Source: Hydrolagus colliei
Lineage: Eukaryota
DNA length: 64,000 bases
Direction: 5' to 3'
Assembly (NCBI GenBank): GCA_035084275.1
Contig: CM068757.1
Coordinates: 9,672,001 to 9,736,000, forward strand
Shown here: one piece after another, positions 3,236 to 46,798 of the stretch
Layout of the letters: every line of letters starts with the position of its first letter
Numbering within the stretch: position 1 is the stretch's first letter
Made by a program: the position numbers and the translations under genes
The notes under the pieces: generated by a model
What the model was told of the DNA's origin: nothing
The model's input: the letters and a program-made list of their open reading frames with translations, nothing else
Databases searched by the model: none

Positions 3236-3655
3236 CTCCTCCCAAGATCAATGAAATCAACAAACCCACTCGCTTTATACATGGGCAGCGTGTCGATCTG
3301 AGATGGGAAGTGACTGGTTTCAAACCAAAAGAGATAGAGATCATGATATTACTGACGAGGAAAGGAAAACAGCCACTGGAGCTATTTGTCTGGAAATTCA
3401 CAAAGAATAAAAATGAAGGTCAGGTTGAAGAAGGTTTTCATCTCCTGAAAACAAAAAATGGATCTGACGGGGATAATTCGTTCTCTGCTGACACCCCACA
3501 ATGTGATCAGCTCGAAAAAGGGACCTTCAGGGTAAGGTGTCACTTATGGTTCTGTCCTGATGTATCTGAGGACGATGGAGCTCAAATAACAATGCAAGTT
3601 CATCACAAGGCTCTGAAACAGCCTCTCAAAAAATCTGTAACATTAGATGTTGAAG
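3236..3655 (+). CDS. Copy A post-TM Ig C1-like domain D1
   Basis: ccacag| to GAAG|gtaag, 420 bp, phase 1/1. APPKI..LRWEVTGFKP..GTFRVRC..GAQITMQVHH. Confidence 0.85.
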
Positions 3656-4984
3656 GTAAGATTTGCATTGTGCACCTCCCTACCTCCACCTAACCACACC
3701 CACATGTCAATGTGCAAACAATGGCAAGAAATAAAAACATGGAAATCCGGGGTATTGATCCTTTCTAATAATAAAAAAAAAAAATTTGGTCACTCAATCC
3801 AGAATGACAGTGTGAAATTGGCTGCCGGGTTACGCCCATAAAATATGCACTCAATACACTTTACAGTGTATTCTGTTGAGTGCTTTGAGACGTCTCAACA
3901 GTGGGATAAGGCACGATATCAAACACAATAATTATTATTATAATTAGAGGAAACAAGGTTATTCACCCCATCGAGCCTATACTGGTGGTCACTCATCCAC
4001 TGGAGCTATCTCCCTGTATCCCAATTTTCTACTCTTCCCGCTTACCCAATGATGAGCTGCTTCAAAACCACTGCAACATTGTTGAGCTCCAAGAGTTACC
4101 TTATGCCCAGTAACCCTGTGTGGTCAGTTGACAGATTGACTCAGTTGGTGACGCTCTCTCCTGTGGGACAGAAGGTCGTCAGTATTTCAATTGGCATCTG
4201 AAAACCTGCCCTTCACCTCTGGCTATATAGAAGCTACCATAATCTCTGTCACTCTTACTGTGTGTCACTCTCTCTTTCGTTCCCTCTCAGCTTCGGAGAG
4301 AGAAGAGAATAGATTGAGAGGAGAAACAAAAGGGGAGAGAGAAGAGAGAGAGACAGGGAGGGAGAAAGAAGAACACATAAAAACACGGACAGTTTGTGTT
4401 CATACAACGTTTATATGAACATGGAAGTTCTCAGACAATAATAGCCTTGCACATGACATATCACCTGATCATGCCTTTGAGACTTCACAGAATAAACTGT
4501 AAACAGAGGAATGTGGAGTAAGGAAACTTGCACAATATTTCGCCTGCTGGAAATCGTACCCAGGTCTCTCGCTTATGAGCTACAGGACTCCACAGAATAT
4601 ACTGTAAAGCAGATTGATTGTGTAATTTGTGTGCGACGAGCAGCAGCCAATTGTGCACAGCAGTGTCACACAAATAGTCATGGATTAAGTGACCAATTTA
4701 TTATTTTAAAATATTTTTGAAGCAATTATTATCCCTGAAGTACAATCTGAGAATCTACTAATAACCAGGTTCCTACATACAGATGGGTAAACAGAGGCGT
4801 GTGGATCAAGATAATTTAAGGCCCACCATTTCCAGGAATCAAACGAAACCTGAGGTTGAAGTGCGAACGGAATCCAGGGGATCAATGTGAGACCCCAGTG
4901 TGAGCCCCTAGATTGATTTTATGATTTGTAACTGGACACAGTGTGGCCCGTTGTAGAATTACAGCATAATGTTAATAATGTTTG

Positions 4985-5275
4985 TGGAGTCCTGTAGCTC
5001 AGTGGTTAGAGCACTCGCCTTACAAGCGAGGGACTTGTGTTCAGTTCAAGCATGGTGAAACCTTGGGCAAGTTTCCTTGCTCCACATGCCTGATAATAAT
5101 CCCTCAAAAAAAAATTGGTCATTTTAATCCACAATTATTTGTGGGGCACTGCTGTGCGCAATTGGCTGCCACAATTCACCCACAGTTAATTCACTTTACA
5201 GTATATTATGTGCAGTGCTTTGAGATGTCTTGAAGACGTGAGAAGCGCTATATAAAACACAAGGATTATTATTAA
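4985..5275 (+). mobile_element. tRNA-derived SINE, second family; other copies at 1-210, 4485-4690(-), 47631-47830(-), 48117-48410
   Basis: A-box-like gtagctcagtggttagagc, degraded B box, body shared with other copies, tail gcgctatataaa..attattatt. Confidence 0.7.
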
Positions 5276-5298
5276 TAACATGCTACTTGTGTTTACAG

Positions 5299-5706
5299 CT
5301 CCTCCCACGATGATTGAAATCAACATACCCTCTGGTATTGTGCACGGTGTCAATGTGCCTCTGACATGGGAGGTTAATGGCTTCAACCCACGGGCCATTG
5401 TAATTGCTGTATTGGTGAAGAGGAAAGTGGATCAGGAAGCAAAGCAACTGTTTGATTGGCAGATCCCAGAGAAAGAAAAGCAGCCAATCCCACATGATAT
5501 TAACCCCAGCATTGCTACACAAGTTAACTCCTTCACTGCTGAGGTGGCGACGATTGAAAAGACAGATAAAGGGACTTTCAGTGTGAAGTGCAGCGTTGCC
5601 ATGTGTGCTGATGTAATCAGGGATAATGATGCTGAATTCACTGTTGAAGTTAAACATCAGGCTGTGGATAATCCTCTCACTAAAGCTATAACATTATGTG
5701 TCGCAG
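5299..5706 (+). CDS. Copy A post-TM Ig C1-like domain D2
   Basis: tttacag| to GCAG|gtaaat, 408 bp. LTWEVNGFNP..TFSVKC..DAEFTVEVKH. Confidence 0.85.
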
Positions 5707-6589
5707 GTAAATTCTACCTCTGTATTTTCTCTCTCTCTCTGGTGCTAATATGTGTGTTGAAGTGCAGCATGCTGCTGTGTGTGTCCCTCTATGCTACAAT
5801 AGTTATTTTTGTTTGTGACAGTGACGTTCTATCACATAGACATCTGTGCCGACAGCCACCCCCCTTCCCCTCTCTATCCAGGCTCAGTGGATGACTCTGT
5901 CACTTTAAATCGCTCAAACACATTAGCTGAAGTGAACAATGCCATACTAATGCATGTTATTGCTGTTGTGTTTGGGGGCAGCTCTGTTGCAGGTTGATGG
6001 GGAGGTGATGGGCTCTGTGGTAACAGTCCAGCCCAACATCAGCCTGAAATCTCATCTGTTTTCTTGAGAAACTTAAACAAATCGATTTTGAGATCCTCAG
6101 ACTTGCCTACAATTCACTTCTTGCTCTCACACCTCGCTACCTCTCCAATCTGCAAACACCCACTTCTCAACCCACTCCGTTCGCTTGCTCAAACCTTTGG
6201 CATCTTCCTTGACCTGTCCACGAAACTATCGGCAGCCAGGCATTCAACAACGATACCCTGAACCTCTGAAACTCCCTTCCCCAAACTCCAGCTCGCCCTC
6301 CATCTCCATCAATCATTGGATCACAGCTGAAGGTTCTACTCTCTGACCATGTCTACCATCACCTCCCCTCTCTCCCCAGCTCAGTATTAAACTACAATAT
6401 TGCGAAGCTAATCAAGACGTTACCCTGCATGAAAGTTGCTATGTTAAATGGAAGTTGCTATTGTTGAAAGAGTGTGTAACTCTGTCTGAAGCCTTGCTGC
6501 AGATTCTCATTGTAAATTGTGTGTGAGGCTGTGTGGTGTGTCCTGTAACTGGATTTAATCTTTACATGATATTTGTGTTTGTGTTATAG

Positions 6590-7003
6590 CTCCTCCCATA
6601 ATTACTGAATGGCCGGCAACCCCTGATATGACACATGGTGACACCTCCACTCTGAGTTGGTCAGTGACACGGTTCAATCCACGTCCCATTGTAATTGCTG
6701 TATTACTGAAGAGAAAAGGGGAGTCAAGATCACAGAAGCTGTGTTATTGGCAGATGGAGAAAGAACAACCAGCAGGAAATCAACCAGTAAACATTCCTGT
6801 TAGCCATGACACAAAGGATGACTCCATCAATCCAGAGATGGCAACGATTTTACAGGGAACAAATGGGACTTTCAGTATGAAATGCAGTGTTACCATAAAT
6901 GCTGATGTATCCAGGGATGATGGCGCTGAGTTCACTGTTGAAGTTCAACATGAGGCTCTGGAGAATCCTCTCACTGAATCTGTAACATTACGCGTTAAAG
7001 GGG
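6590..7003 (+). CDS. Copy A post-TM Ig C1-like domain D3
   Basis: gttatag| to GGGG|gtaagt, 414 bp. LSWSVTRFNP..TFSMKC..GAEFTVEVQH. Confidence 0.85.
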
Positions 7004-7974
7004 GTAAGTGCTGCCTCTGTCTGTTCTCTTCTCTCTCTCCCTCACACATCAGTGTAGAAATATTCAGGTGAAGGTGATGATTTTACAAACAGAGGAGTTT
7101 GAAATGATCTGTTAATCTCCAGAGTGAGTTTTGCGGCTGTGTGTGAAGAGAGGCCACATTATTCAGGGCTCCACAGTCACATGGTCAAAATTATTTTGTA
7201 CACAATAAATAATCTGGTGATTTCTGACAAATTTGTAACGTTAAAATATAAAATCGAATGTGTATATATGCACTCATATGGGTGTCAGCTCCGAGCATGA
7301 AGCACTCTAACCTCTCGTCCATAAGGTTGTGGGTTCACATCACATCAGGATCTGAACCTACAGTCTAGTAGGGACTTGTAATGAGGAAATTAAATGATAA
7401 TATCTTAAAGAATTTGATTGTTGACAATGGTTTCAATTTCAAATAATAATTCCCTTTATTACCATCTAGGATGACACTGCAGTGTGTGCTGGGGGGGCTC
7501 TGTAATGCTGGAGTCTGTTATTTCAGATGTTAAACCATGATCTCATCTGGGTGTTCAGCTAAATGGCCGGCAACCCCTGATAAGACACACTTCAGCACTA
7601 AAACAATTTCTCCAGTGTTGTGTCCTTCATCTCTTGCTCTATGTGTATGTCTAGCTCTCTCTCTGTCTCCCTTTCCCCCTTTCTCTCTTCCTTTCTCTTG
7701 TAATCAGTCGGGATAAAATGTAGAATTTGAAATTATTTATTTGTCAAAAGGCCAGTGTGCACCCTGTCTGGGGGCAGCTCTTGCAGGTTACTGGAGGCTT
7801 AGACAGGCTGAGTGCTTATGATGGAGTTTAACATCACTCTACAGCTCCAGCCTGGTGTCCTCTGTCATGACTTGCAGGCTTTTCACTCGTTTCTGTGGAT
7901 TCAGTTTCCAATTTGTATCTGACACAGACATGGACTTGAATGTTTTTATGTGGATTTGTCATTTTGTTTTGTAG

Positions 7975-8397
7975 TTCCTCCTAAAATTACATTTCCAAAT
8001 CAAAAGAAAATGAAACATGGTAAGAATGCTGAGCTGCAATGGACAGTGACTGGGTTCACTCCTGGGAAGATCTCGATTGTTTCCAGTCTTCGAAGGAAAG
8101 GAGAGGAAGTAAGACAACTGTTTCACTGGGAAATTCCAAATAAGGAAGCATTTCAAAGGAAGAGAATCCCCTGGAATCTTGAGGACAAATCAGAGAGATC
8201 CAACAATGTTGCCTCCTTCACTGCAGTGGTGCCTAAATGTGAACACGACACCAAAGAAGGAACCTTCAGAGTAAATTGCAAAATCAACATGACTCCTGAT
8301 GTGTCCACGGATGATGGAGCTGAATTAATTGTTCAGGTTCAGCATGAGGAATTTCCTGAGTTTGTCACTGACAGTTTAAAAATAAACATTGCTGGAG
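7975..8397 (+). CDS. Copy A post-TM Ig C1-like domain D4
   Basis: ttttgtag| to GGAG|gtagg, 423 bp. LQWTVTGFTP..PKCEH..TFRVNC..GAELIVQVQH. Confidence 0.85.
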
Positions 8398-9741
8398 GTA
8401 GGTTCTGCCGTCAATATTGTGTCCTCTCTGTCCCATATGCTCTGTGGCAGTGTTTAGAATAAAGTAACAGTTTCCTCCACAATGGTTCAGCAACTGAGAT
8501 CACCACTCAGTGAAACCCAGAGCCTCTCAGTCCAGAAGGTGGCAGGATATGGCATCTGAGAAATCTCGTCATAGTGCTTAAGATTATCCAAACCAGAGAG
8601 TTCATATGTGCCATCTACATGTGGAAATTTCCCTTTTTCCAGAATGGAATGCTCACAGTAGTAAACAAACGTGGATCAAGAACTTGACTAATAGGACTAC
8701 CTCAGGATTGATTTTACTCCGATATTGTCAAGTGCGTTATTGTTCAAACAGAGAGTGAGTTTGTCCCAGTGTCCTGGCCAACGATCCCCATTATAAAATC
8801 TGTCACTTAATTCATCGCTATTTACAAAATGTATGCATCCTGTTTACCTGTTACCAGAGAGCATCAGCTGCACGTTGGCAAGATACAAAGCTTGGAGGTC
8901 ACAGAGTATGTGCTGGAATACTGTGGGAATTTAAGAAGGGAAATGCGCATAGTTTGCTATTTCTAGTTAGGACCACACCACCTGTTAAGGCTTTGGTTTG
9001 CAGGGTTAACAAGACCTGAATAGGTAGAATCCCTGCTCTCAGTGACTGGTCTTGCTGTCCCAGGCCTGCTGATGAGCCAGGCCGACTGGTTTATAATGCT
9101 GTGTACAAGTTGGCTGACACATTTGACTTCAAGTACAGAGCCAGTGAACTTCACACACAAATTTTGTGATGCGCTCTGAGACGTCTCAGTGATGTGATAA
9201 GGTGTTATATCAGTTGCAAGAATTATAAGGATTATTAGAATGTTGTAGCCATCTTATCTCAGAGGAGATACTGCACACCTCTGTTCCCCCTCCCCCCAGG
9301 TGGGCTGAGTTGAGCTGAGGCAGTAGCTGTGCAGCTCTGTTTGGTCTCTGTGGGTGAATTGTCTGCCCACATTGATAGTCTGGGCTGAGACATGAGAAAC
9401 CCTGGTAATTAATAGAGAAAATAATCCAAGCTCACCTCCTGATCAGCACCTTGGATACCTCTCACCTTCACAATATCGGACAGGTCAGATCTCTGCAGCT
9501 GGGAAGTACACACACCACACAGAGGGTTTACAGGCTGAGTAACATTATTACAGAGTGTATGTTATACAGGACTCATTTACAGTTTGGTTCCACTGGGTGC
9601 TGTGTTCATGAGTCCGTCCGGCACAGTTGGCAGTGCTCTTGTCTCTGTGTCAGAAGGTATTGAGTTCAAGCCCCACATTGACACACTGGCTGTCACTCCA
9701 GTGCAGTGCTGCAATGCTTATATTGTGTTTCTGTTTGATAG

Positions 9742-10173
9742 CTCCTCCTCAAATTTGTGGACCTTATCCACCCGGGAAAAGTCTGCATGCTGTGAAAGAC
9801 ACAGTGACATGTGTAGTTATTGGTTTCACTCCTGGGAAAATGACCATAATTTTCAGCCTGAAGAGGAACGGGCAGCAACAGCAAATACAACGACTGTTTC
9901 ACTGGGAAATTCCCAACAAGGAAATATTTCAAGAGTCGATAGGAGGAGCTTTTCCTCTGCAGGACCGATCGGATAGAGACAATAAAGATGCGTCCTTCAC
10001 TGCTTTGGTGCCAAAGTGTGAACCTCTTGGCGATGGGACTTTCAGAGTAATTTGCATCATTGATATGATTCCTGATATTGATATGGATAATGGAGCTGAA
10101 TTATCTGTTGAGGTTCATCATGATGTTATTGTTGGCTCTCTCACTAATACTGCAATATTACTCATTACTCCAG
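9742..10173 (+). CDS. Copy A post-TM Ig C1-like domain D5
   Basis: tttgatag| to CCAG|gtagg, 432 bp. VTCVVIGFTP keeps the B-strand Cys; F strand GAELSVEVHH has no Cys. Confidence 0.85.
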
Positions 10174-10394
10174 GTAGGTTCCTCGATCATTGTTGTGTCT
10201 CTCTGTCTCTGTGACAATGTTTAGGACATTGTAATGATTTGCTCCCCGATGGCCCAGCAGCTGAGGTCATTGCTCAGTACAGGGTTGAGTCGAGTCTCTC
10301 AGGCCAGAAGCTCTGAGATTCGAGTTCTGGTCTGGGAGCTGATCTGAGCTGACCTGGGCCAGTAGCTGTGCTGGTCTGTTTGTATGTCAGCCTG

Positions 10395-10790
10395 GAGGTT
10401 TGGTAGCACTTTTGCCTCTGACTCAGAAGGTTGTGAGTTTAAGCCCCACGTCAGGACTTGGAATCACATCGTCTAAGCTGACACTCACTCCAACGCAGTG
10501 CTGGATGTCTGTGCATTATCGGTGGTGCCGTCCGTTAAATGAGATGTTAAACTGACGTTCTACCCGCTAGTTCAGGTAGACATTGTAGATCCCATAGCGC
10601 TATTCAAAAAGAAAAGGGAAGTTTCTTCAATCCCACAACTAACATAGGTCACTCATCCCATGGTTGTTTCTGGGACATTACAGTATGCAAACTGGTTGCT
10701 GTGTTCGCCAACAAAATATGCAGTGAATCCACTTCACAGTATAACCTGTGTAGCACTTTGAGACATAATAAGGTCTATTTCAAATGATAG
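10395..10790 (+). mobile_element. Near full-length tRNA-derived Deu-domain SINE (SacSINE1-like); paralog at about 53872-54290
   Basis: ggtagcacttttgcctctgactcagaaggttgtgagtttaagcccc head, ggtgccgtc..gagatgttaaac core, L2-type tail. Confidence 0.7.
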
Positions 10791-10920
10791 GATATTAGAG
10801 AATATAATCAAAGCTCACGATCACCACAGTGGATATCTCTCACCTCAGATGTATCAGGTCTCAGATGAGATCTCTGCAACTGGGAAGCAACAGCCTTAAT
10901 GCAGTGTGCACAGTATGCAG

Positions 10921-11070
10921 AGGATAAGACCATAAGATTTAGGAGCAGCAGTAGGCCATTAGGCCTCTCGAGCCTGCCACGCCATTCAATAAGATCATGG
11001 CTGATGTTCTAATCTAACTCCACCTGCCCACCTTATCCCTTAAAACCTTTATTCATAAGAAATCTATCAG
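10921..11070 (-). mobile_element. CR1 3'-UTR fragment
   Basis: cataagatttaggagcagcagtaggccatt..aagatcatggctgat, a typical CR1 3' end in reverse. Confidence 0.5.
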
Positions 11071-11347
11071 GATGTAAGTACTCGGTGTACATTTTACAGG
11101 ATGTTGTAGTTTTTTCTGGGGCAGCTCTATTGCAGGTTGATGGAGAGATGTTGGTGCTCTGTGGTCATGGTGCAGCTTAACACCAGGCTACAGCATTGTC
11201 TGCTGTCCTCAGGAATAATGCGCACATCTGTCTGAAGGTTTGCAGCAGATTTGGATTGTAAATATTGTGTGAAGCAATGCGTGGGTGGTGCAGTGTGTCC
11301 TGTAACTGGAATATAATCTACATTTGCTGCTTGTGTTTGTTTTATAG

Positions 11348-11758
11348 CTTCTCCCACAATTACTAAAATCCAGGTCCCCCCGAATATTAAGCACGGTGCC
11401 ACCTACACTCTGAATTGGTCAGTGACTGGGTTCCATCCATGGGCCATTGTAATTGGTGTAAAACTGAAGAGAGGAGGGGAGACGAAAGAAAAGAAGCTGT
11501 TCAAGTGGAAGACGACAGAGAAAATTCCACCACCTGGAGTGATGCCAGTAAGGATCCCTATTGAATCCCAATCAAAGGATGATCTCATCACTTCTGAGGA
11601 GGCGATGATTATACAGGAGAAAACTGGCAATTTCAGAGTGAACTGCAGTGTTACCATGGTTCCTGATCTATCCAGCGATGATGGCGCTGAGTTCATTGTT
11701 GAAGTTAAACATCAGAACAAAGCGCTCACCGAAAAAGTAACATTACACGTTAAAGGCG
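11348..11758 (+). CDS. Copy A post-TM Ig C1-like domain D6
   Basis: tttatag| to GGCG|gtaagt, 411 bp. LNWSVTGFHP..NFRVNC..GAEFIVEVKH. Confidence 0.85.
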
Positions 11759-12017: not shown

Positions 12018-12660
12018 CCGTATATCTCCGCATATAAGGCGCACTTTTTTTCAGGTCGGAAGATCTCGAAAGTGGGGGGTGCGCCCTATACACAGGTACA
12101 AGCAATTTTGAGCCTCGGAGATACAGTAAACAGGAGGGGCGGCCGGCGCGCTGTCAGCCGGGGTTTGGTCAGTGTCCGGCGGGGGTTGGGAGGAGCGGGT
12201 GACGGGGCTTCGGCCTCGGCCGCCCGGGCAGCGGCAGCAGCAGCGGACTTCAGTGCTGTGCATACCTTCTGCCGAACCCAGTCTGCCTCACTCCCTGCCG
12301 CTCTCCCCCTCTCTCTCTCCCGGGCTGCCGGCCTGCCGCTCTCCCCCCCCTCGCTCTCCTGGGCTGATGGCCTGCCTCTCTCCCCCCCTCTCTCTCCCGG
12401 GCTGCCGGCTGCCTCTCTCTCTCTCTCTCTCCCTCTCTCTCTCTCTCCCGGGCTGCCGGCCTGCCTCTCCCTCTCTCTCTCCCGGGCTGACGGCCTGCCT
12501 CTCTCCCTCTCTCCCTCCCTGGCTACCTGGCTGCCTGCCTCTCTCTCTCTCTCTCTCCCTACCTCCCTTCTGCCGACAATATCATTGAAAATGTTTCCGT
12601 TTTTTTTCACCAAGAAAAGGTCAAAAACGAGGGGTGCGCCTTATACGCGGAGATATATGG
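12018..12660. mobile_element. Tc2/pogo-like MITE inserted in a SINE
   Basis: 27-bp TIRs CCGTATATCTCCGC(A/G)TATAAGGCGCAC with TA duplicated at 12016 and 12661. Interrupts the SINE tail ttcactttgcagta|cattctgtg. Confidence 0.85.
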
Positions 12661-13989
12661 TACATTCTGTGAAGAGCTTTGAGATGTCTAGAAGACATGA
12701 GAAGCACTGTATCAAATGCATTATTATTATAAGTCACGTCACAGGCAGATGTTCAATGGGGATTTATTATTTTATACATGGTGGTAAATAATCTGGTGAT
12801 TTCTAGGAAATATTTAATATTAAAACACGATATCTTACACCATTATATATGCATAACTATGGGTGTCAGCTCTGAGCATGTTATCCTGTTGTCCCTTGTC
12901 CAGAAGGTTGTGGGTTCACATCATATCAGGACCTGAACTTCCAGTCTAGTGCAGAGACTTGTAATAAGGAAATGAGTGGATCATATCTTATAAGGAATTT
13001 AATTGTTGATGGTTTCAATTTCAAATGACAGTTTCCTTTATTGTAGACTTTCTCAAGTCAATGGATATACTAGTACTAGGCAGTATAGTATCTAGATAAA
13101 GTAGTGCCTAACTCAGGAGAAGCAACCGTGATCAGTTACCCATCGCTTGGGAGAACTCAGGCATTCTCTTACTTATCAGTTTATTTTCCTCGTCTCCCTC
13201 TCTCTCCCTCTCTCTCTCTCCCACGTTAGCAGTCCATACTTATATGCAGCCTGTTTCAGGAATGTCTCATCGTTAACTCCAAACGTTCCAAGTTTGTTCC
13301 CAGGTGCAAGGTACATAACTGAAATTATAAACACCCGTACATTAAGTTTGCTCATCTTGCTCATTATGCACTTGATGTACCAAGAAACAATATCTGTGAG
13401 ATCAGTCAGCTTTTTAAGATTGGGGATTTGAACAAAATCAACAGTATCTGTGAGTTGAATTAGCTCGTGTCTCCTGAAAGTTGTTTTCTCACACTCAATT
13501 TTCAGTTATTCTTTACCCAAGATTACGCCTTGTACGAGAATCAAACCTGACTTGAGACACAAGTGCTCTAACCACTGCCCTACAGGACTAAAACAATCTT
13601 GAATTTTGGTGTAGATCCATATCATGTCTAGAGGACTATCTCAAAGTGCCTCACAAGATTCAAAGTGAAATGGAGTAACTGTATCAGTAGACAAATGTGG
13701 CTTCACGATAGCACACAGCAATGTCTCACAAACAGTGATGGAGTGAGTGATCAATTGTATTTGGGTATTTGATGGCCAAAACACCAGAAGAACTTTGTTC
13801 GCTTTTTGAGTAATGCCACATGTGCTTTAATGTCCACCGGAAGAGGCAGGTGGTACTTCGGATTAACATCCATTCGTGGGATGTATCTGTGCAGCTGGGA
13901 AGGAACAGCCTTAATATTGTCAACACATTGTGTAGAGGATATAAAGACTTCAAGTAACATATTACAGTGTGAACGTTTTACAGGATGAT

Positions 13990-14200
13990 GATGCAGTTGT
14001 GTCTGGGGGCAGCTCTGTTGCAGGTTGATGGGGAGGGGATGGGGTTCTGTGGTCAGGGTGTAGAAATATCACTGTAGAAATATCGAGGTGAAGAATGGCT
14101 TTATTCACAGCTTCACACTCACATGGTCAAAGGAGGTTTATTATATTGTACACAGTAAATAATTGGTGATTTCTGACAAGAATGTAATATTATAATATTA
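13990..14200 (+). pseudogene. Exon-deleted D7-type unit in copy A
   Basis: The pre-exon flank (gcaggttgatggg..ctgtggtcagggt) joins at about 14059 to the post-exon flank (cactgtagaaatat..gaggtgaagaatggc) with no exon between. Confidence 0.7.
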
Positions 14201-15201
14201 AAACCATTATATATGCATGTACTGTATATGGATGTGAGCTCAGAGCATGTAGCATCTCTTGTCAGAAGGTTGTGGGATCGCATCACATCAGGACCTGAAC
14301 TTACAGTCTTGCATGACACTGTGCAGTGTGTGCTGGGGGAGGCCTGTAATCCTGGAGGTGCCATCTTTTGGTTGAGGTGTTGAACCGCTGTCCCGTCTGC
14401 CTGTTCAGCTAAACGTTAAAATTCCTACAGCACGATCAAAAAGAGAAGGGAGTTTCTCCCATTGTCTTGGCCTCTATATATATCTCTCCGGCTGTGTGTG
14501 CGAATCTCTCTCTTTGTGTCTCTCTATCGCTATATCTCTCATTATCTCGCTCATTCCCACTTTCTTCTTTTCTCTCGTATTTATTTAGGGAAAAATTTAG
14601 AACTTTATTATTCATTTGAATAATGAAATTATTAAATTATTCATTTGTTGAAAGGCCAGTGTTCACCCTGTCTGAGGGCAGCTATTGTATGTTACTGGAG
14701 GCTCAGACAGGCTGTGTGCTAATGATATAGTTTAACATCACTCTGCACCTCCAGCCTGGTGCCTTCTGCCATGACATGCAGGCTTTTCACTTGTTTCTGT
14801 GGATTTTGTTTCTAGTTTGAGTCTGACACAGACATAGACTAGAAATGTGGTTGTCTATAGCACACAGGTGTTTCCCACAAATATTCCCGGATTGAGTGAC
14901 CAGATTATTATATTTGTTTAGCTATTATGTGCTGCAGAGAGTGATTGGCCAATCCATGAACCATCTAACATCTGCTTACTGCTGGGTAAACAGAAGCATG
15001 TGGAATAATGAAATTTTTGCCCTCGTTAAGTGAAAATTTCATTAGGCGGGAGGGAGGTCCCTACTGTGTTTCTGTGCATGAAGATAATCAGTTTCATTCC
15101 CAGTAATGCCTTGCTCGTAGCCTAGCGCCTAGCGCTACTAATTGCGGTGTACCAACGACGCATAAGGCAGGTAGAACTGCTATTGGAGAGAGACTGGGAG
15201 T

Positions 15202-16945
15202 TAGGGAATGGCGATATGGGATTTTTGCGGATATGGATATATCGGTTTGCTCATACCTGCTTAAACCGATCTATCGAGTTTTTGTACTGCGCATGCGCGT
15301 GCATTCGAAGTGCGCGTGCATTGATGGCGCGCGCGCATTTATGGTGCGCGCTCAGTCGCGGTGCGCGCGCATTGACGGTGCGTCCGCACTGACGATGCGC
15401 GCACAGTCGCGGTGCACGCACATTTCGAAATGCGTGCTCTAGGTCCAGAAAGTTTGTAATGTTGTTGTCAAGGTCTGTTGATTTATACGATGTTGTTTGC
15501 TCCCTACCTCCCCCTCTCCTTCTCTCCCTCCTCTCCTCTCTCCTTCNNNNNNNNNNNNNNNNNNNNNNNNNNNNNNNNNNNNNNNNNNNNNNNNNNNNNN
15601 NNNNNNNNNNNNNNNNNNNNNNNNNNNNNNNNNNNNNNNNNNNNNNNNNNNNNNNNNNNNNNNNNNNNNNNNNNNNNNNNNNNNNNNNNNNNNNNNNNNN
15701 NNNNNNNNNNNNNNNNNNNNNNNNNNNNNNNNNNNNNNNNNNNNNNNNNNNNNNNNNNNNNNNNNNNNNNNNTCCCCTCGCTCCTTCTCTCCCTCCTTTC
15801 CCCCTCTCCTTCTCTCCCTCCCTCTCCTCTCTTCCTCTCTCCTTCTCTCCCAACTTTCCCCCTCTCCTTATCTCCCTCCACCTCTAAACACAAAATAGAA
15901 CACACACACACCAAAAACAAAATCTAGAGATTTATTCTCCTCCATTTCTTGCTTGAAACTAGCATGTAATGTCCACGTGTAAATGAGATCTATTACAATA
16001 GAAAAGAGAGAGACAGACAGTCTGACTGTTAGTTAGAAGCCAGATTATCACTGCTGTGTGTGTCTGACTAGACCCACACATAGAAACAGTGATAATCTGG
16101 CTTCTAACTCTCTCCCACACAAAAATAACACTTACAGCCACAAAATGCCACTTATTTTTATGTAGTCTGAAGTCTGAATTAATGTCCTTCGCCATTGGCA
16201 AGCTCTCCTTTGCTATGCAAAAAGTGACAGCGTTCGTGATACTTTGCCACTTTTTGTCCCCTCTCTGGTACAATGTTCTCTCCTCTTAAATAAAGCAGGA
16301 ATTGTTTGAGCTGCACTGGCCCCACTACCTGTCGCTTTCTCCGAAGCGCTGGTTCGACTTCCTGCTGTTGTCGACAATGATTTCGCTCTGAGGGCAGCGT
16401 GCTGGGCGGGGTGGTGCTGCTTAATGTGTTGTCGCAGGTTGCTCGTGCTCGAATCAGATGTCTTAACCAAGACCTTGCAAACTGTACATCTATACACACC
16501 ATTACTGACTGCATTGTTTTCAAAGTAGTCCCATACGGGGCTTCTTTTCCCCATGATGAGAAAGGTAAATTTTCAAACTACAATTTTCAGCGATGCCACT
16601 TTGTTAACACGCCACGACTCACGTCGAGTATACACGGTAAAGTGTGCGCGCGCATCGGATGAGCGTGCCCGTTAATTGTGCGCGCGCACCGAATGTACGC
16701 GCATTCCATGCTCTAGATCTAGGAGGTTGCAATGCTGGCGACAAGGTAAGCTGGAAAAGATCGCATTACACTGATAATACCAACAATATTGATATATTGC
16801 CAGGAACGATATTAAAAATATATCGATGTATATTTTTAAAATCGAATCTCTCGATATAACAGTTTTTTTAGAATCACCATATCGGCATACCGATCTGAAA
16901 ATCATATCGGGTTTAATCGAAAAACCGATTAATCGCCGTTCCCTA
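15202..16945 (-). mobile_element. Internally deleted hAT DNA transposon with a BED-finger transposase remnant (contains an N gap)
   Basis: TIRs TAGGGAATGGCGAT / ATCGCCGTTCCCTA. 8-bp TSD ctgggagt/ctgtgagt; the empty site ctgtgagt is seen in three paralogous units. ORF 16554-16213 has SPVWDYF..CTVC..STSNLRQHIKQHH, with a frameshifted ITNAVTFCIAK. Confidence 0.88.
15547..15772. other. Assembly gap (others at 20617-20760 and 58291-58493)
   Basis: Runs of N inside CT/GA microsatellites. Confidence 0.99.
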
Positions 16946-17979
16946 CTGTGAGTGAGATTGTGACAGTGAGAAACTCAGAGAGAGAGAGAGAAAGAGACAC
17001 AGAGAGAGAGACTGGGTCAGAGATAGAAATAGAGAGAGAGAGATCGCGACCGAGACAGACAGAGAGAGAGAAAGAGACACAGAGAGAGAAATAGAGAGAG
17101 AGAGACACACAGAGGGAGACTGAGACAGAGAGAGAGAGAGATGGAGAAAGAGAGAGACAGGGAGAGGGAGAAACAGACAGACAGAGAGAGAGAATGTAGC
17201 TTGTATCGCTTTTGGAAATGATCAAGCCGCCCGCTGCTAGCAGTAAAAGTCTCCGCTGGCTTTTTCACAGTAGCGTCATATAGTTGCCTAGCATCCTGCT
17301 GCTTAACCTCCTCTCATACTGCACTGCTTTCTCTTGGATTAGGTGGCATGCTGAACTAAGTGTGTGTATGTATGTAGCTTCCTCGACTGAGACTGCGCTT
17401 GTGTTGCGGAGGCTGCCGGGAGACGAGAAGCGCGCAAAATTTAAACTTTCTTTATAGCGAGCACAGCCTTCACTAAGCGCATGGGGGGGTACAAATAGAA
17501 ACCATCTTTATAGTGAAGTTTCATTAACAGGGCGTGTGTTAAGCGGGGGCTGCCTGAAGTGACACAGGATTCCTTAACATCCACCTGTGGAGGCAGATAG
17601 GACTTTGGTTTAAAATCTCATCTGTGGGACGTGTCTGTCGTGGGAAGGAACAACCTCAATACTGTCAGCACATCGTGCATGTATTGTAAAGACTAGTGTA
17701 AAGAGTAACAGTGTGAATATTTTACAGGATGTGTAGTTGTGCCTGGGGGCAGCTCTGTTGCAGGTTGATGGGGACGTGATGGGCTCTGTGGTCAGGGTCC
17801 AGCTTAACACCAGCCTGCAACATCGTCTGCTGTCCTCAGCAATAGTGTGCAGCTCTGGATGTCTGAAGCTTTGCTGCAGATTTAGATTGTAAATTGTGTG
17901 TGAAGCAATGTGTGAGGCAGTGTCGTGTGTCCTGTAGCTGGAATATAATCTTGACATGCTGCTTGTGATTGTTTTGTAG

Positions 17980-18396
17980 ACCCTCCCACAATTACTGAAG
18001 TCAATATACCCTCTGATATTAAACACGGAGCCCAAACCACTCTGAGCTGGTCAGTGACTGGGTTCAATCCACGGCCCATTGTAATTGGTGTATTCCTGAA
18101 AGAATGGGAGCAGAACGCACAGCTGCTGTTTTGTTGGCAAACAACAGAGAAAACACAAGCAGAAAGAAAGAAGTCAGTGAAGATTCCAGGAAGCTCTGAC
18201 AGAAACAATGTCGCCATCACTTCGAAGGAGGCAACGATTGAACGGGAGGCAACTGGGAATTTCAGGGTGAAGTGCAGCGTTACCATGGTTGCTGATATAT
18301 TCAGGGACAATGGTGCCGAGTTCATTATTCAAGTTGAACATCAGGCTATTCTTGGGAAACCTCTCACCAAATCTGTACCACTACACGTTAAAGGGG
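17980..18396 (+). CDS. Copy A post-TM Ig C1-like domain D7a
   Basis: ttttgtag| to GGGG|gtaagt, 417 bp. DPPTITEVNIP..LSWSVTGFNP..GAEFIIQVEH. Confidence 0.8.
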
Positions 18397-19053
18397 GTAA
18401 GTGCTGCCTCTGTCTGGTCTCCTCTCTCTCCCTCACACATCACTGTAGAAATACTGAGGTGAAGAGTGGCTTTATTCACGGCTCCACACTCACATGGTCA
18501 AAGGGGATTTATTATATTTTACGCAGTAAATTATTGGTGATTTCTGACAAATATGTAATATTATAATATAATATTGAAACCATTGTATAGTCATAAATAT
18601 GGGTATGAGCTCAGTGCATGTAGCATCTCTTGTCAGAAGGTTGTGGGATCGCATCACATCAGGACCTGAACTTACAGTCTGGCATGACACTGTGCAGTGT
18701 GTGCTGGGGGAGGCCTGTAATCCTGGAGGTGCCGTCTTTTGGTTGAGGTGTTGAACCGCTGTCCCGTCTGCCTGTTCCGCTAAACGTTAAAATTCCTACA
18801 GCACGATCAAAAAGAGAAGGGAGTTTCTCCCTTTGTCTTGGCCTCTCCGGCTGTGTGTGTGTCTCTCTTTATGTCTCTCTCTTGCTATCTCTCTCGTTCG
18901 GTCTCTCATTCCCAATTCCTATCGACCTTTCTCTTGTATTTATTTCGGATATAATGTAGAACGTTAAGTTATTTATTTGTCAGTGTGCAATTTGTCTGGG
19001 GGCAGCGTTTGCAGGTTACTGGAGGCTCAGACAGGCTGTGTGCAAATGATGTA

Positions 19054-19729
19054 CCGTATATCTCCGCGTATAAGGCGCACCCGCGTATAAGGCGCACCCC
19101 CCGTTTTTGACCTTTTCTTGGTGAAAAAAAACGGAAGCATTTTCAATGATATTGCCGGCAGAAGGGAGGAGAGACAGGTAGGTAGGGAGAGACGCAGGCA
19201 GGCAGGGAGGGAGGGAGGGAGGGAGAACGGCAGGCTAGCAGCCCGGGAGAGAGAGAGTGAGAGCGGCAGGCCGGCAGCCCGGGAGAGAGAGACGGAGAGC
19301 GGCAGGCAGGCAGGGAGAGAGAGAGTGAGAGAGGCAGGCCGGCAGCCCGGGAGAGAGAGAGGGAGAACGGCAGGTCGGCAGCCCGGGAGAGAGAGACGGA
19401 GAGCGGCAGGCAGGCACGCAGGCAGGGAGGGAGGGAGAGAGAGTGGCAGGGATGGAGAGAGGCAGACTGGGTTCGGCAGAAGGTAAGCACAGCACTGAAG
19501 TCCGCTGCTGCTGCCGCTGCCCGGGCGGCCGAGGCCGAAGCCCCGTCACCCGCTCCTCCCAACCCCCGCCGGACACTGACCAAACCCCGGCTGACAGCGC
19601 GCCGGCCGCCCCTCCTGTTTACTGTATCTCCGAGGCTCAAAATTGCTTGTACCTGTGTATAGGGCGCACCCCCAACTTTCGAGATCTTCCGACCTGAAAA
19701 AAGTGCGCCTTATACGCGGAGATATACGA
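19054..19729. mobile_element. Second copy of the Tc2/pogo-like MITE, opposite orientation
   Basis: Same TIRs and TA TSD; interior is the reverse complement of 12018-12660. Empty site at about 57126. Confidence 0.85.
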
Positions 19730-20192
19730 TAGTTTAACATCACTCTACACCTCCAGCCTGGTGCCCTCTGCCATGATGTGCAGGCTTTTCACTTGTTTCT
19801 GTGGATTTTGTTTCTACTTTGTGTCTGACACAGACATAGACTAGAAATGTGGCTGTCTACAGCACACAGGTGTATCCCACAAATATTCTCGGATTGAGTG
19901 ACCAGATTATTTGTTGAGCTATTATGTCCTGCAGAGAGTGATTGGCCAATCCACGAACCATCTAACATCTGCTTACTGCTGGGTAAACAGAAGCATGTGG
20001 AATAATGAATTTTTTGCCCTGTAGAGGAATCTAACCTGAGGTTGGATTGAGAGGCGAGTGTTCTAACCAATATGCTACAGGACTCCAATGATAATCCTTG
20101 CATTGTGGTACAGCTCCTTATGATGTCTTCATTAGATTCACTGTGAAATGGAGTAACTGTGTATTTGTAGGCAAATATGGCAGTACAAATGG

Positions 20193-20290
20193 TAATGTCA
20201 CACAAGCAGCCATGCTGATAATGTCTCACAAGCAGCCATGCTGATAATGTCTCACAAGCAGCCATGGTGATAATGTCTCACAAGCAGTGG
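20193..20290 (+). repeat. 26-bp minisatellite (taatgtctcacaagcagccatgctga)
   Basis: About 4 copies here, about 3 at 23353-23422, about 2 at 57590-57635. Confidence 0.8.
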
Positions 20291-20375
20291 TCAATTGTAT
20301 TTGTGGTGGGGGGGATGGGAGCGGGGGTGGATTGATGGCCAGGACACGGGGAGATCTCCCTTCTCTTTTCGAATA

Positions 20376-21345
20376 CAGGTAGTCCCCGCTTAACGAAGGG
20401 GTTGGGGACTTCGAAACTCCTCGTTAAGCGAAAAGTTTGTTACGCGGGAGGGAGGTCCCTACTGTATTTCCGTACATGAAGAAATTCAGTTTTGTTCCCA
20501 GTAATGCCTTGCGCGTAGCCTAGCGCTACTAATTGTGGTGTACCAACGATGCCATAAGGTAGGTAGAACTGCTATTGAAGGCTGCTATTGAAGAGAGAGA
20601 CTGTGAGTGAGATTGTNNNNNNNNNNNNNNNNNNNNNNNNNNNNNNNNNNNNNNNNNNNNNNNNNNNNNNNNNNNNNNNNNNNNNNNNNNNNNNNNNNNN
20701 NNNNNNNNNNNNNNNNNNNNNNNNNNNNNNNNNNNNNNNNNNNNNNNNNNNNNNNNNNNNGACAGAGAGAGAAATAGAGAGAGAGAGCGCGACCGAGACA
20801 GAAAGAAAGAGATACAGAGAGAGAGACTGGGACAGAGAGAGAAATAGAGAGAGAGAGCGACCGAGACAGACAGAGAGAGAGAAAGAGACACAGAGAGAGA
20901 AAGAGACACAGAGGCAGATTGAGACACAGAGAGAGAGAGACTGAGAAAGAGAGAGGGAGAAACAGACAGACAGAGAGAGAGAATGTACCTTGTATCGCTT
21001 TTGGAAACGATCAAGCCGCCCGCTGCTAGCAGCAAAAGTCTCCGCTGGCTTTTTCACAGTAGCGTCATATAGTTGCCTAGCATCCTGCTGCTTAACCTCC
21101 TCCCATACTACACTGCTTTCTCTTGGATTAGGTGGCATGCTGAACTAAGTGTGTGTATGTATGTAGCTTCCTCGACTGAGACTGCGCTTGTGTTGCGGAG
21201 GCTGCCGGGAGACGAGAAGCGCGCAAAATTTAAACTTTCTTTATAGCGAGCGCAGCCTTCGCTAAGCGCATGGGGGGGTACAAATAGAAACCATCTTTAT
21301 AGTGAAGCTTCATTAACAGGGCGTGTGTTAAGCGGGGGCTGCCTG
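20376..21345 (-). mobile_element. Tigger-like non-autonomous element (contains an N gap)
   Basis: TA-flanked TIRs CAGGTAGTCCCCGCTTAAC / GTTAAGCGGGGGCTGCCTG; QLYD..FAASSGRLDRFQKRY remnant; GA-rich interior. Confidence 0.8.
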
Positions 21346-21768
21346 TAGTGACACAGGATTCCTTAACATCCACCTGTGGAGGCAGATAGGACTTTGGTTT
21401 AAAATCTCATCTGTGGGTCGTGTCTGTCATGGGAAGGAACAGCCTCAATACTGTCAGCACATCGTGCATGTATTGTAAACACTAGTGTAAAGAGTAACAG
21501 TGTGAATATTTTACAGGATGTGTAGTTGTGCCTGGGGGCAGCTCTGTTGCAGGTTGATGGGGACGTGATGGGCTCTGTGGTCAGGGTCCAGCTTAACACC
21601 AGCCTGCAACATCGTCTGCTGTCCTCAGCAATAGTGTGCAGCTCTGGATGTCTGAAGCTTTGCTGCAGATTTAGATTGTAAATTGTGTGTGAAGCAATGT
21701 GTGAGGCAGTGTCGTGTGTCCTGTAGCTGGAATATAATCTTGACATGCTGCTTGTGATTGTTTTATAG

Positions 21769-22185
21769 ACTCTCCCACAATTACTGAAGTCAATATAACC
21801 TCTGATATTAAACACGGAGCCCAAACCACTCTGAGCTGGTCAGTGACTGGGTTCAATCCACGGTCCATTGGAATTGCTGTATTGCTGAAGAGAGAACGGG
21901 AGCAGAACGCACGGCAGCTGTTTTGTTGGCAGACAACAGAGAAAACACAAGCAGAAAGAAAGAAGTCAGTGAAGATTCCTGTTACCTCTCACGTTAACGA
22001 TGTCGCCATCACTTTGAAGGAGGCAACGATTGAACGGGAGGCAACTGGGAATTTCAGTGTGAAGTGCAGTGTTACCATGGTTGCTGATATATTAAAGTAC
22101 AATGGCGCCAAGTTCATTATTCAAGTTGAACATCAGACTCTTGGGAAACCTCTCATCAAATCTGTACCACCACATGTTAAAGGGG
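21769..22185 (+). CDS. Copy A post-TM Ig C1-like domain D7b
   Basis: ttttatag| to GGGG|gtaagt, 417 bp, open. Tandem copy of D7a. Confidence 0.8.
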
Positions 22186-23510
22186 GTAAGTGCTGCCTCT
22201 GTCTGGTCTCCTCTCTCCCCCTCACACATCACTGTAGAAATATTGAGGTGAAGAGTGGCTTTATTCACGGCTCCACACTCACATGGTCAAAGGGGATTTA
22301 TTATATTTTACGCAGTAAATAATTGGTGATTTCTGACAAATATGTAATATTATAATATAATATTGAAACCATTGTATAGGCATAAATATTGGTATGAGCT
22401 CAGAGCATGTAGCATCTCTTGTCAGAAGGTTGTGGGATCGCATCACATCAGGACCTGAACTTACAGTCTGGCATGACACTGTGCAGTGTGTGCTGGGGGA
22501 GGCCTGTAATCCTGGAGGTGCCGTCTTTTGGTTGAGGTGTTGAACCGTTGTCCCGTCTGCCTGTTCAGCTAAACGTTAAAATTCCCACAGAATGATCAAA
22601 AAGAGATGGGAGTTTCTCCCATTTTCTTGGCCTCTATATACATATCTCTCCGGCTGTGTGTGCGAATCTCTCTCTTTATGTCTCTCTATCGCTATATCTC
22701 TCATTGTCTCGCTCATTCCCACTTTCTCTCTTCTTTCCTCTTGTATTTATTTGGGGAAAAATTTAGAACTTTATTATTCATTTGAATAATTAAATTATTA
22801 AATTATTAATTTGTTGAAAGGCCAGTGTTCACCCTGTCTGAGGGCAGTTATTGTATGTTACTGGAGGCTCAGACAGGCTGTGTGCTAATGATATAGTTTA
22901 ACATCACTCCAGCCTGGTGCCCTCTGCCATGACATGCAGGCTTTTCACTTGTTTCTGTGGATTTTGTTTCTAGTTTGTTTCTGACACAGACATAGACTAG
23001 AAATGTGGCTGTCTATAGCACACAGGTGTATCCCACAAATATTCCCGGATTGAGTGACCAGATTATTATATTTGTTGAGCTATTATGTCCTGCAGAGAGT
23101 GATTGGCCAATCCACGAACCATCTAACATCTGCTTACTGCTGGGTAAACAGAAGCATGTGGAATAATGAAATTTTTGCCCTGTAGAAGAATCTACCCTGA
23201 GGTTAGATTGAGAGGCGAGTGCTCTAACCAATATGCTACAGGACTCCAATGATAATCCTTGCATTGTGGTACAGCTCCTTATGATTTCTTCATTAGATTC
23301 ACTGTGAAATGGAGTAACTGTGTATTTGTAGGCAAATATGGCAGTACAATTGATAATGTCTCACAAGCAGCCATGCTGATAATGTCTCACAAGCAGTCAT
23401 GCTGATAATGTCTCACAAGCAGTGGTCAATTGTAATTGTGGTGGGGGGGATGGGAGGGGGGGTGGATTGAGGGCCAGGACACGGGGAGATCTCCCTTCTC
23501 TTTTCGAATA

Positions 23511-23923
23511 CAGGTAGTGCCCACTTAACGAAGGGGTTGGGGACTTTGAAACTCCTCGTTAAGCGAAAATTTCATTAGGCGGGAGGGAGTTCGCTACTGT
23601 GTTTCTGTACATGAAGAAAATCAGTTTCGTTCCCAGTAATGTCTTGCGCGTAGCCTAGCGCCCAGCGCTACTAATTGCGGTGTACCAACGACGCCATAAG
23701 GTAGGTAGAACTGCTATTGAAGGCTGCTATTGAAGAGAGAGACTGTGAGTGAGATTGTGACAGTGAGAGACTCAGAGAGAGAGAAAGAGAGAGAGAGAAA
23801 GAGACACAGAGAGAGAGACTGGGACGGAGAGAGAAATAGAGAGGGAGAGAGAGAGAGAGAGCGACCGAGACAGACAGAGGGAGAGAAAGAGATACAGAGA
23901 GAGAGACTGGGTCAGAGAGAGAA

Positions 23924-23961
<38 letters not shown>

Positions 23962-24668
23962 AAACAAACAGAGAGAAGGAGATACAAAGAGAGAGACTGG
24001 GACAGAGAGAGAAATAGAGAGAGACAGACAGCGCAACCGAGACAGACAGCGAGAAAGAGATACAGAGAGAGAGAGAGAGAGAGAGAGAGCGTGATCGAGA
24101 CAGACGGAGAGACAGTAAGAGACCAGGGAGAGAGACTGGGACAGAGAGAGAAATAGAGAGAGAGAGAGCGCATGACCGAGACAAACAGAGAGAGAGAAAG
24201 CGACACAGAGAGAGAAAGAGACTCAGAGGGAGACTGAGACAGAGAGAGAGAGACTGAGAAAGAGAGAGACAGAGAGAGGGAGAAACAGACAGACAGAGAG
24301 AGAGAATGTACCTTGTGTCGCTTTTGGAAACGATCAAGTCGCCCGCTGCTAGCAGTAAAAGTCTCCGCTGGCGTTTTCACAGTAGCGTCATATAGTTGCC
24401 TAGCATCCTGCCGCTTTACCTCCTCTCATACTGCACTGCTTTCTCTTGGATTAGGTGGCATGCTGAACTAAGTGTGTGTATGTATGTAGCTTCCTCGACT
24501 GAGACTGCGCTTGTGTTGCGGAGGCTGCCGGGAGACGAGAAGCGCGTGCAATTTAAACTTTCTTTATAGCGAGCGCAGCCTTCGCTAAGCGCATGGGGGG
24601 GTACAAATAGAAACCATCTTTATAGTGAAGTTTCATTAACAGGGCGTGTGTTAAGCGGGGGCTGCCTG
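23511..24668 (-). mobile_element. Tigger-like element, duplicated with the D7 unit
   Basis: Same flanks and TIRs as 20376-21345, with a longer GA microsatellite. Confidence 0.8.
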
Positions 24669-25091
24669 TAGTGACACAGGATTCCTTAACATCCACCTGT
24701 GGAGGCAGATAGGACTTTGGTTTAAAATCTCATCTGTGGGACGTGTCTGTCGTGGGAAGGAACAGCCTCAATACTGTCAGCACATCGTGCATGTATTGTA
24801 AAGACTAGTGTAAAGAGTAACAGTGTGAATATTTTACAGGATGTGTAGTTGTGCCTGGGGGCAGCTCTGTTGCAGGTTGATGGGGACGTGATGGGCTCTG
24901 TGGTCAGGGTCCAGCTTAACACCAGCCTGCAACATCGTCTGCTGTCCTCAGCAATAGTGTGCAGCTCTGGATGTCTGAAGCTTTGCTGCAGATTTAGATT
25001 GTAAATTGTGTGTGAAGCAATGTGTGAGGCAGTGTCGTGTGTCCTGTAGCTGGAATATAATCTTGACATGCTGCTTGTGATTGTTTTATAG

Positions 25092-25511
25092 ACTCTCCCA
25101 CAATTACTGAAGTCAATATACCCTCTGATATTGAACACGGAGCCGAAACCACTCTGAGCTGGTCAGTGACTGGGTTCAATCCACGGCCCATTGGAATTAC
25201 TGTATTGCTGAAGAGAGAACGGGAGCAGAACACACAGCAGCTGTTTTGTTGGCAGACAACAGAGAAAACACAAGCAGAAAGAAAGAAGTCAGTGAAGATT
25301 CCTGTTACCTCTCACGTTAACGATGTCTCTATCACTTCGAAGGAGGCAACGATTGAACGGGAGACAACTGGGAATTTCAGTGTGAAGTGCAGCGTTACCA
25401 TGGTTGCTGATATATTCCGGGACAATGGTGCCGAGTTCATTATTCATGTTGAACATCAGACTATTCTTGGGAAACCTCTCATCAAATCTGTACCACTGCA
25501 TGTTAAAGGGG
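25092..25511 (+). CDS. Copy A post-TM Ig C1-like domain D7c
   Basis: ttttatag| to GGGG|gtaagt, 420 bp, open. Tandem copy of D7a/b. Confidence 0.8.
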
Positions 25512-46666: not shown

Positions 46667-46798
46667 CTCCTCCCAAGATCAATGAAATCAGCAAACCCAC
46701 TCGCTTTATACATGGGCAGCGTGTCGATCTGAGTTGGGAAGTGACTGGTTTCAAACCAAAACAGCCTCTCAAAAAATCTGTAACTTTAGATGTTGAAG
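46667..46798 (+). CDS. Copy B D1 exon with a 288-bp in-frame internal deletion
   Basis: Same splice sites as copy A D1. GFKPK joins directly to QPLKKSVTLDVE; 132 bp. Confidence 0.75.

Follow-up and report, generated by a model that had tools for sequence, protein, structure and literature searches.

Tandem B7-H6-like genes of Hydrolagus colliei encode predicted membrane proteins with a tail of C1-derived immunoglobulin domains that lack the canonical disulfide

We examined a 64,000-nucleotide stretch of the Hydrolagus colliei genome (GenBank assembly GCA_035084275.1, contig CM068757.1, positions 9,672,001 to 9,736,000), which we call the window, and found two tandem copies of a B7-H6-like gene, A and B, on the + strand and ~43.4 kb apart. 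Both appear to encode type I membrane proteins in which the transmembrane (TM) segment is followed by a series of immunoglobulin (Ig) domains without the canonical disulfide. We refer to this post-TM type of domain as D-type; the set that we analyzed comprises 15 full domains (D1–D9 of gene A and D2–D7 of gene B). All coordinates are those of the window.

The 5' end of gene A is truncated by the start of the window. The first exon in view (2363..2812, phase 1-1) encodes the extracellular C1 domain (Pfam C1-set, E = 2.2e-15, 57.2 bits), the TM segment (a hydrophobic stretch of 26 residues), and a basic anchor (…FWKKTKQ), and it ends at the donor CAAG/GTAAGG, where the slash marks the exon boundary. 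The exon for the juxtamembrane domain D1 (3236..3655) begins 423 bp later; in the predicted protein, D1 directly follows …KKTKQ, and it is the ortholog of domain 1 of the Callorhinchus protein P0173 (support 100/99). Then come D2 (5299..5706), D3 (6590..7003), D4 (7975..8397), D5 (9742..10173), D6 (11348..11758), D7 (17980..18396), D8 (21769..22185), and D9 (25092..25511), which is the last recognizable exon of gene A. D2, which is the domain we modeled, was identified by its splice sites and by a confident structural model; D3, D4, D6, D7, and D8 by motifs, splice sites, and the domain tree; and D9 by motifs and splice sites. D6 belongs to a D3-like lineage, and a series of three recent repeat units, 3.3–3.8 kb long, begins with D7. 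The region singled out in a preliminary description of this DNA, 3236 to 25511, thus runs from the first base of exon D1 to the last base of exon D9. If the D9 donor is not used, the frame continues for 46 codons (GKCCLCLVSYLSLTHH…) to a stop (25512–25648), and the Callorhinchus P0173 model ends by a similar read-through.

Gene B has a leader exon (31068..31140), a V-set exon (42561..42902), a C1+TM exon (45789..46238, recognized by its splice sites and motifs), a shortened D1 (46667..46798), and D2–D7. The leader (MSGLCVLWSHASLSLLLGCLISPAG), whose donor is in phase 1, encodes a signal peptide; it was found with tblastn using residues 1–25 of protein P0002 (76% identity). D2–D7 were recognized by splice sites and motifs, at 48434–48841, 49725–50138, 51118–51540, 53105–53644, 54800–55219, and 59245–59664, again on the + strand. 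A search of the window found no additional exon of the family between D9 of gene A and the leader of gene B. The window contains no genes that flank the pair. Compared to D1 of gene A (3236–3655), D1 of gene B has an in-frame internal deletion of 288 bp, or exactly 96 codons; both splice sites are kept, and the predicted product is a 44-residue linker. D5 of gene B (53105–53644) has an in-frame insertion of 108 bp (36 codons) relative to D5 of gene A, in the loop before the LFxW motif (…QQQIQQTKTVAGKTQPV…SSEQQMQQLFHW).

Across the two genes, all 19 exons have AG/GT sites, a length divisible by 3, and phase 1-1 boundaries. The acceptors have a pyrimidine tract with AG, and the donors are G/GTAAG or G/GTAGG. 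The spliced products are free of stop codons, with 1,404 amino acids for gene A (partial) and 1,183 amino acids for gene B.

The ectodomain C1 exon has the motifs ...ATLTCDV...KISW...YRCVV, as the preliminary description had read it (LTCDV, ISW, and YRCVV). Among the D-type domains, 13 of 15 have Trp at the B-strand site (LRWEV, LTWEV, LSWSV, LQWTV, LNWSV, or LDWSV), and only D5 of genes A and B has Cys there (TVTCVV and RVTCLV). The F strand is free of Cys in all 15 (AEFTVEV, AQITMQV, AELIVQV), with Val, Met, or Ile at the F-Cys site. The site of the canonical C-strand Trp is V, I, S, F, or R and is never Trp, and a new Trp, in the motif LFxW, is invariant (D3 has the variants LCYW and LWYW). 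So, the claims that the B-strand Cys became Trp except in D5, that YxC of the F strand was replaced, and that the C-strand Trp was lost while LFxW was gained all agree with the full set of domains. The claim that every domain keeps the C1 signatures was too broad. These signatures are present, but three domains have RFNP, EFNP, or GFTA in place of GFxP; GTF is kept in part, with GNF, RTF, or KNF in several domains; and the terminal TL, also kept in part, is missing from D4, D5, and D7–D9.

Altogether, 14 core positions are invariant across the D domains. Invariant residues that the preliminary description did not mention are a Cys in the E strand (GTFxVxC), His16, Asp105, and His120. The E-strand residue, Cys98 (5587–5589 in D2), adjoins the former disulfide site and is probably buried. 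D5 and 38 related domains have both this E-strand Cys and the B-strand Cys.

To place these residues on the C1 domain, we aligned the D-type profile (profile to profile, with hhalign) to a set of 30 canonical C1 domains that belong to the same family. The two align with a probability of 99.1% (E = 6.8e-19). In this alignment, Trp24 corresponds to the B-strand Cys, Val38 to the C-strand Trp, Val116 to the F-strand Cys, and Cys98 to a Ser in the E strand, and an insertion of ~30 residues that contains LFxW sits between strands C and E. The D domains are 137–145 residues long, versus ~95–105 for C1-set. When we compared the profile of all 15 domains to PDB, the hits were exclusively to C1 chains, and they were weak (IgM at 2.9e-4, then IgA, beta2-microglobulin, and MHC [major histocompatibility complex]). 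Of the seven D domains that we scanned with Pfam, six have no C1-set match, and D5 scores 19.1 bits, which is below the cut-off of 21; none of the seven have I-set or filamin matches.

AlphaFold2 predicts a confident Ig sandwich for D2 (predicted local distance difference test, pLDDT, 91.4; predicted template modeling score, pTM, 0.85). The strands of the model are at 19–29 (B), 34–41 (C), 49–56 (C'), 94–103 (E), 113–120 (F), and 127–132 (G), and besides 49–56 there are three short extra strands at 66–68, 79–81, and 84–88. The substituted residues of strands B, C, and F fall mid-strand, so both the alignment and the model put the substitutions at the B and F core positions, as the preliminary description proposed. 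With Foldseek, the best matches to the model are V-like (MPZL1, nanobodies, and CD8; template modeling scores of 0.5–0.62), the C1 domain of MHC class II beta has a similar score, and no titin or filamin chains are among the top 50 matches. The model does not have the seven-strand ABED/CFG topology without C'/C''. The expectation of an Ig fold is borne out for D2, but this is not a plain C1 domain, and its nearest structures are V-like. Because the sequence matches are to C1 domains, yet the inserted residues add strands, the D-type domain is C1 by descent and not by topology.

The best match among solved structures for the V and C1 ectodomain is human B7-H6 (E = 3.8e-26), followed by CD276. 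With a signal peptide, a V domain, a C domain, a single TM segment, and an ectodomain that is closest to B7-H6, the predicted proteins fall in the B7-H6/NCR3LG1 branch. The profile of the 15 D domains, which the preliminary description suggested as a way to find relatives, matches 243 proteins; for 133 of these, E is at most 1e-10. The relatives include proteins from sharks (Heterodontus, Scyliorhinus, Pristiophorus), rays (Pristis, Amblyraja, Narcine, Hemitrygon), Callorhinchus, Latimeria, Protopterus, Erpetoichthys, frogs, a newt, a caecilian, Alligator, and Lacerta. These examples are labeled "uncharacterized" or "natural cytotoxicity triggering receptor 3 ligand 1"; NCBI gives the name NCR3LG1 to relatives with this kind of tail in Alligator, Lacerta, Bombina, and Rhinophrynus. 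A word-indexed homology search with the juxtamembrane domain from Latimeria found only itself, and a homology search with the spliced product of gene B found 7 chondrichthyan proteins, none from its own species.

Among the 150 listed representatives of these relatives, 110 have a TM segment at about residue 230–300 and then Ig domains. In 52 relatives, a full-length D-type match begins at most 60 residues after the TM segment, and behind the D-type domain most of these proteins have 4–8 domains that Pfam calls C1-set. The Callorhinchus protein V9K7L7, which we take to be a transcript-derived entry, is continuous from signal peptide through V, C1, TM, and D-type domain, and then has 6 more Ig domains. 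These sequence matches indicate that the family as a whole, from sharks to reptiles, has the D-type domain as its conserved juxtamembrane domain.

The 52 juxtamembrane domains usually lack the F-strand Cys (present in 4/52) and the C-strand Trp (6/52). They usually have Trp54 of LFxW (42/52), Cys98 (36/52), His16 (45/52), and His120 (47/52). In the window, D1 directly follows the TM segment; it too lacks the F-strand Cys and the C-strand Trp and has LFxW, the E-strand Cys, His16, and His120. The B site is more variable, with Cys in 29, Trp in 12, and Phe in 8. Across 109 full-length D-type matches, the 31 with Trp at the B site never have the C-strand Trp as well, and because the two never coexist, the B-site Trp may be a relocated "pin." The preliminary description proposed a distinct disulfide-free C1 subfamily in which Trp fills the disulfide site. 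The D-type is indeed distinct and ancient, and no Pfam model detects it, but a B-site Trp is derived and belongs to one subfamily (12/52 juxtamembrane domains, versus 29/52 with Cys).

In a phylogenetic tree of D-type domains, all of the domains from the window, together with those from the multi-D genes of Callorhinchus and Heterodontus, form one clade (support 100/98), apart from the single juxtamembrane domains of genes with canonical tails. Because the 15 window domains lie in one clade, the disulfide was lost in one inherited event, not in 15 independent ones. Each of D1–D5 has an ortholog among the domains of Callorhinchus P0173. D6–D9 arose by lineage-specific copying of a D3-like exon, and Callorhinchus amplified a different exon, which is related to D4/D5. 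By exon duplication, the length of the tail changes quickly.

The divergence between genes A and B is a mosaic (3616–9097 vs. 46759–52250). It is ~3.5% over D2–D4, and the synonymous divergence (dS) is 0.18–0.32 for C1+TM, D5, and D6. Also, 29588–30299 and 63289–64000 are 99.7% identical. The mosaic suggests gene conversion or unequal crossing-over.

Two assembly gaps interrupt introns of gene A. Gap 1 (15547–15772), in the intron between D6 and D7, is within a CT-rich microsatellite, 3.8 kb past D6 and 2.2 kb ahead of D7. Gap 2 (20617–20760), in the intron between D7 and D8, falls where an (AG)n-like array begins, 2.2 kb past D7 and 1.0 kb ahead of D8. In the third repeat unit, which has no gap, the flank that matches gap 2 runs into an (AG)n-like array (23774–24305). 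We looked for broken exons or frames at both gaps and found none; the nearest exon is at least 1 kb away. Extra copies of the D7-type unit (3.3–3.8 kb) may hide in the gaps, so our copy number may be too low. The region at 14068–15023, which adjoins gap 1, is 86–92% identical to the normal 3' flank of a D7-type exon, with no exon before it, and it looks like the relic of a further repeat unit. Elsewhere in the window, intron 1 of gene B contains an intact-looking long interspersed nuclear element on the – strand (37798–41621), with a 928-amino-acid ORF2 (endonuclease and reverse transcriptase) and a 304-amino-acid ORF1 (GDSL esterase-like). GC-rich minisatellite blocks in opposite orientations (12051–12800 and 19118–19700) give spurious long open reading frames on both strands (Ser/Leu/Pro-rich and Arg/Glu/Gly-rich).

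To ask on which side of the membrane the tail lies, we compared domains before and after the TM segment across the relatives. These counts are mostly from predicted gene models, with TM segments called by simple hydropathy, and they are uncorrected for shared ancestry. Both canonical Cys are present in 127 of 140 pre-TM domains (91%) and in 238 of 525 post-TM domains (45%). Neither Cys is present in 4% of pre-TM domains versus 27% of post-TM domains, and exactly one ("orphan") Cys is present in 5% versus 28%. If we leave out the first post-TM domain, both Cys are present in 50%. The fraction of domains with both Cys is lower after the TM segment than before it in 98 of 105 proteins. N-glycosylation sequons occur at 1.73 times the expected rate before the TM segment and 1.15 times after it; in the window itself, there are 5 pre-TM sequons versus 1.6 expected, and 12 post-TM sequons versus 13.8 expected. 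Finally, the mean number of Lys and Arg within 15 residues of the TM segment is 1.73 before it and 3.26 after it, which is a positive-inside pattern. Because orphan Cys are expected where the bond does not form, this family-wide comparison suggests that the tail is in the cytosol; the window alone hardly does so. The preliminary description took the loss of the disulfide as independent support for a cytosolic location. This does not hold as argued, as a single inherited event in the window is weak evidence; the support comes only from the orphan Cys, the sequons, and the basic residues across the family.

We propose that genes A and B encode type I membrane proteins that belong, within the B7 family, to the B7-H6 (NCR3LG1) branch, and that each consists of signal peptide, V domain, C1 domain, a single TM helix, basic anchor, and a tail of tandem D-type domains. 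The D-type domain is derived from a C1-set domain and would fold without the B–F disulfide by means of a repacked central core. This core would have Trp (ancestrally Cys) at the B site, an aliphatic residue at the F-Cys site, a small aliphatic residue at the site of the C-strand Trp pin, a Cys at a core position in the E strand, and the insertion of ~30 residues, which contributes the LFxW Trp and extra strands. In a subfamily from holocephalans and bullhead sharks, the D-type domain would have been amplified through duplication of symmetrical phase-1 exons. The B7-H6-like ectodomain would be displayed at the cell surface. More speculatively, the putatively cytosolic tail would most likely act as a rod-like scaffold of variable length, independent of disulfides, that links a ligand of a natural killer (NK) cell receptor to partners inside the cell. 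We have moderate confidence in this proposal as a whole, that is, in B7-H6-branch proteins with a C1-derived, disulfide-free, cytosolic scaffold tail.

Several observations weigh against this proposal. The gene structure was read from genomic DNA alone, nearly all of the relatives are computational gene models, and the model of gene A ends at D9 without a defined 3' end or a stop codon. The placement of Trp24, Val116, Cys98, and Trp54 in the core of the predicted structure is from their strand positions and homology. The ratio of nonsynonymous to synonymous substitution rates (dN/dS) between genes A and B is 0.66–1.6, which does not demonstrate recent purifying selection. Also, both Cys persist in about half of the relatives' post-TM domains, and the Trp pin in 96% of those past the first, which would fit an oxidizing compartment as well. 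Given that 45% of post-TM domains have both Cys, a cytosolic position does not force their loss.

These Cys and Trp residues would also fit D-type domains that are extracellular or luminal, by way of a TM-skipping isoform or of a separate downstream gene; the loss of the disulfide would then be a peculiarity of this subtype of Ig domain, as in other extracellular Ig domains that lack the bond. Extracellular Ig domains typically have phase 1-1 exons, there is a weak phase-1 GT within the coding part for the TM segment, and there is an in-frame ATG 8 codons upstream of D1. However, the short peptide that this ATG would add ahead of D1 is not a signal peptide, and C1 and TM share one exon, whose strong donor lies only past the basic anchor. 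The order of signal peptide, V, C1, TM, and D-type domain recurs in ~110 cluster representatives, from sharks to reptiles, and V9K7L7 runs continuously through the TM segment. With post-TM sequons at chance level and orphan Cys common, we consider an extracellular tail to be quite unlikely. A cytosolic tail could also go together with a disulfide loss that says nothing about location: the loss could be a single accident in a juxtamembrane domain that was then copied by exon duplication. The window domains do form one clade that derives from a single juxtamembrane domain, and the F-strand Cys was already missing from 48 of the 52 juxtamembrane domains family-wide. But domains beyond the first have also lost Cys (both are kept in 50%, versus 91% of ectodomain C1 domains), and often just one Cys was lost, which is expected only if the bond does not form. 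This explanation seems unlikely to us.

Another concern is that the D exons might be decaying or unused relics, in which case the functional product would be a short protein like B7-H6 that ends by read-through after the TM exon, where a stop lies 15 codons into the intron (…KKTKQGKDLHSPKQQRQTWG and then the stop). The dN/dS of about 1 and the 96 codons missing from D1 and 36 added to D5 of gene B would fit with this. On the other hand, the ectodomain exon has a similar dN/dS (0.73), and a high ratio fits fast-evolving immune genes. The A/B ratios are uninformative, reflecting either too few changes or fast evolution. Despite 57–140 substitutions per pair of domains, the reading frames are open, and the probability of this under neutrality is 0.02–0.2 per domain pair. 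The frame and both splice sites are kept in 15 full exons and in the truncated one, and D1–D5 match Callorhinchus domain by domain. Because the frames are free of stops, and the splice sites and the 14 core positions are maintained, these sequences fit better with fast-evolving functional immune genes than with decay, and we think it very doubtful that the D exons are relics.

It is useful to compare the proposed proteins to known systems. Human B7-H6 (NCR3LG1), the ligand of NKp30, is a type I membrane protein; its V domain is membrane-distal, and its C domain is membrane-proximal (PMC6514059). The window proteins share this V and C ectodomain, and this likeness rests on sequence, with human B7-H6 as the best solved match (see above). 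In contrast, their tail has 6–9 Ig domains. The tail of human B7-H6 is short, with signaling motifs and a Gag-like segment, and is not known to have Ig domains. Like the canonical C1-set domains (PF07654: constant domains of Ig and T-cell receptors, MHC, beta2-microglobulin, tapasin, and the C domain of B7-H6), the D-type domains have GFxP, xVxH, and phase-1 exons, and the profiles are homologous (at 99.1%, as given above). Unlike those domains, they lack the B–F disulfide and the C-strand Trp, they have the ~30-residue insertion, their Pfam scores are below threshold, and they are C-terminal to the TM segment.

In titin, obscurin, and filamin, tandem Ig domains reach their fold in a reducing compartment, have no structural disulfides, and act as rods or scaffolds. 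D-type domains are likewise tandem Ig arrays without the disulfide. But the domains of titin, obscurin, and filamin are I-set or filamin-type, in soluble cytoskeletal proteins, whereas D-type domains are C1-derived and tethered to a membrane ligand. UrIg and UrIg2 of sharks have a non-rearranging V domain and long C1 arrays that expanded by exon duplication (PMC12227049), so they resemble the window genes in being genes of cartilaginous fish with a V domain and an exon-duplicated C1-type array. We rejected the idea that the window genes are UrIg or UrIg2, as UrIg2 has its TM segment after all of the C1 domains, the canonical disulfide and Trp pin, and a VJ-type V domain (PMC12227049).

The family's proteins are already known as unnamed database predictions. 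We searched the literature for Ig domains behind the TM segment of B7-H6-like proteins and did not find any, though an earlier description may exist. The D-type profile detects a type of domain that Pfam misses. We also put forward, more tentatively and at slightly less than even confidence, that the tail is the ancestral cytoplasmic C1-type tail of the B7-H6-type ligands for NK cells in jawed vertebrates, from sharks to reptiles, where it would have a dedicated juxtamembrane domain free of the disulfide and a quickly evolving length, and where it might be an intracellular sensor or anchor that controls the display of the ligand.

C1-set domains are regarded as a hallmark of the extracellular molecules of adaptive immunity, and we know of no C1-type domains inside the cell. 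If the tail is cytosolic, then this would be, as far as we know, the first C1-set fold to be placed in the cytosol. It would also be a natural re-engineering of an antibody-type domain to fold without a disulfide, which is relevant to the design of intrabodies. And the B7-H6-type ligands outside of mammals would carry a large intracellular module that is conserved, fast-evolving, and unstudied.

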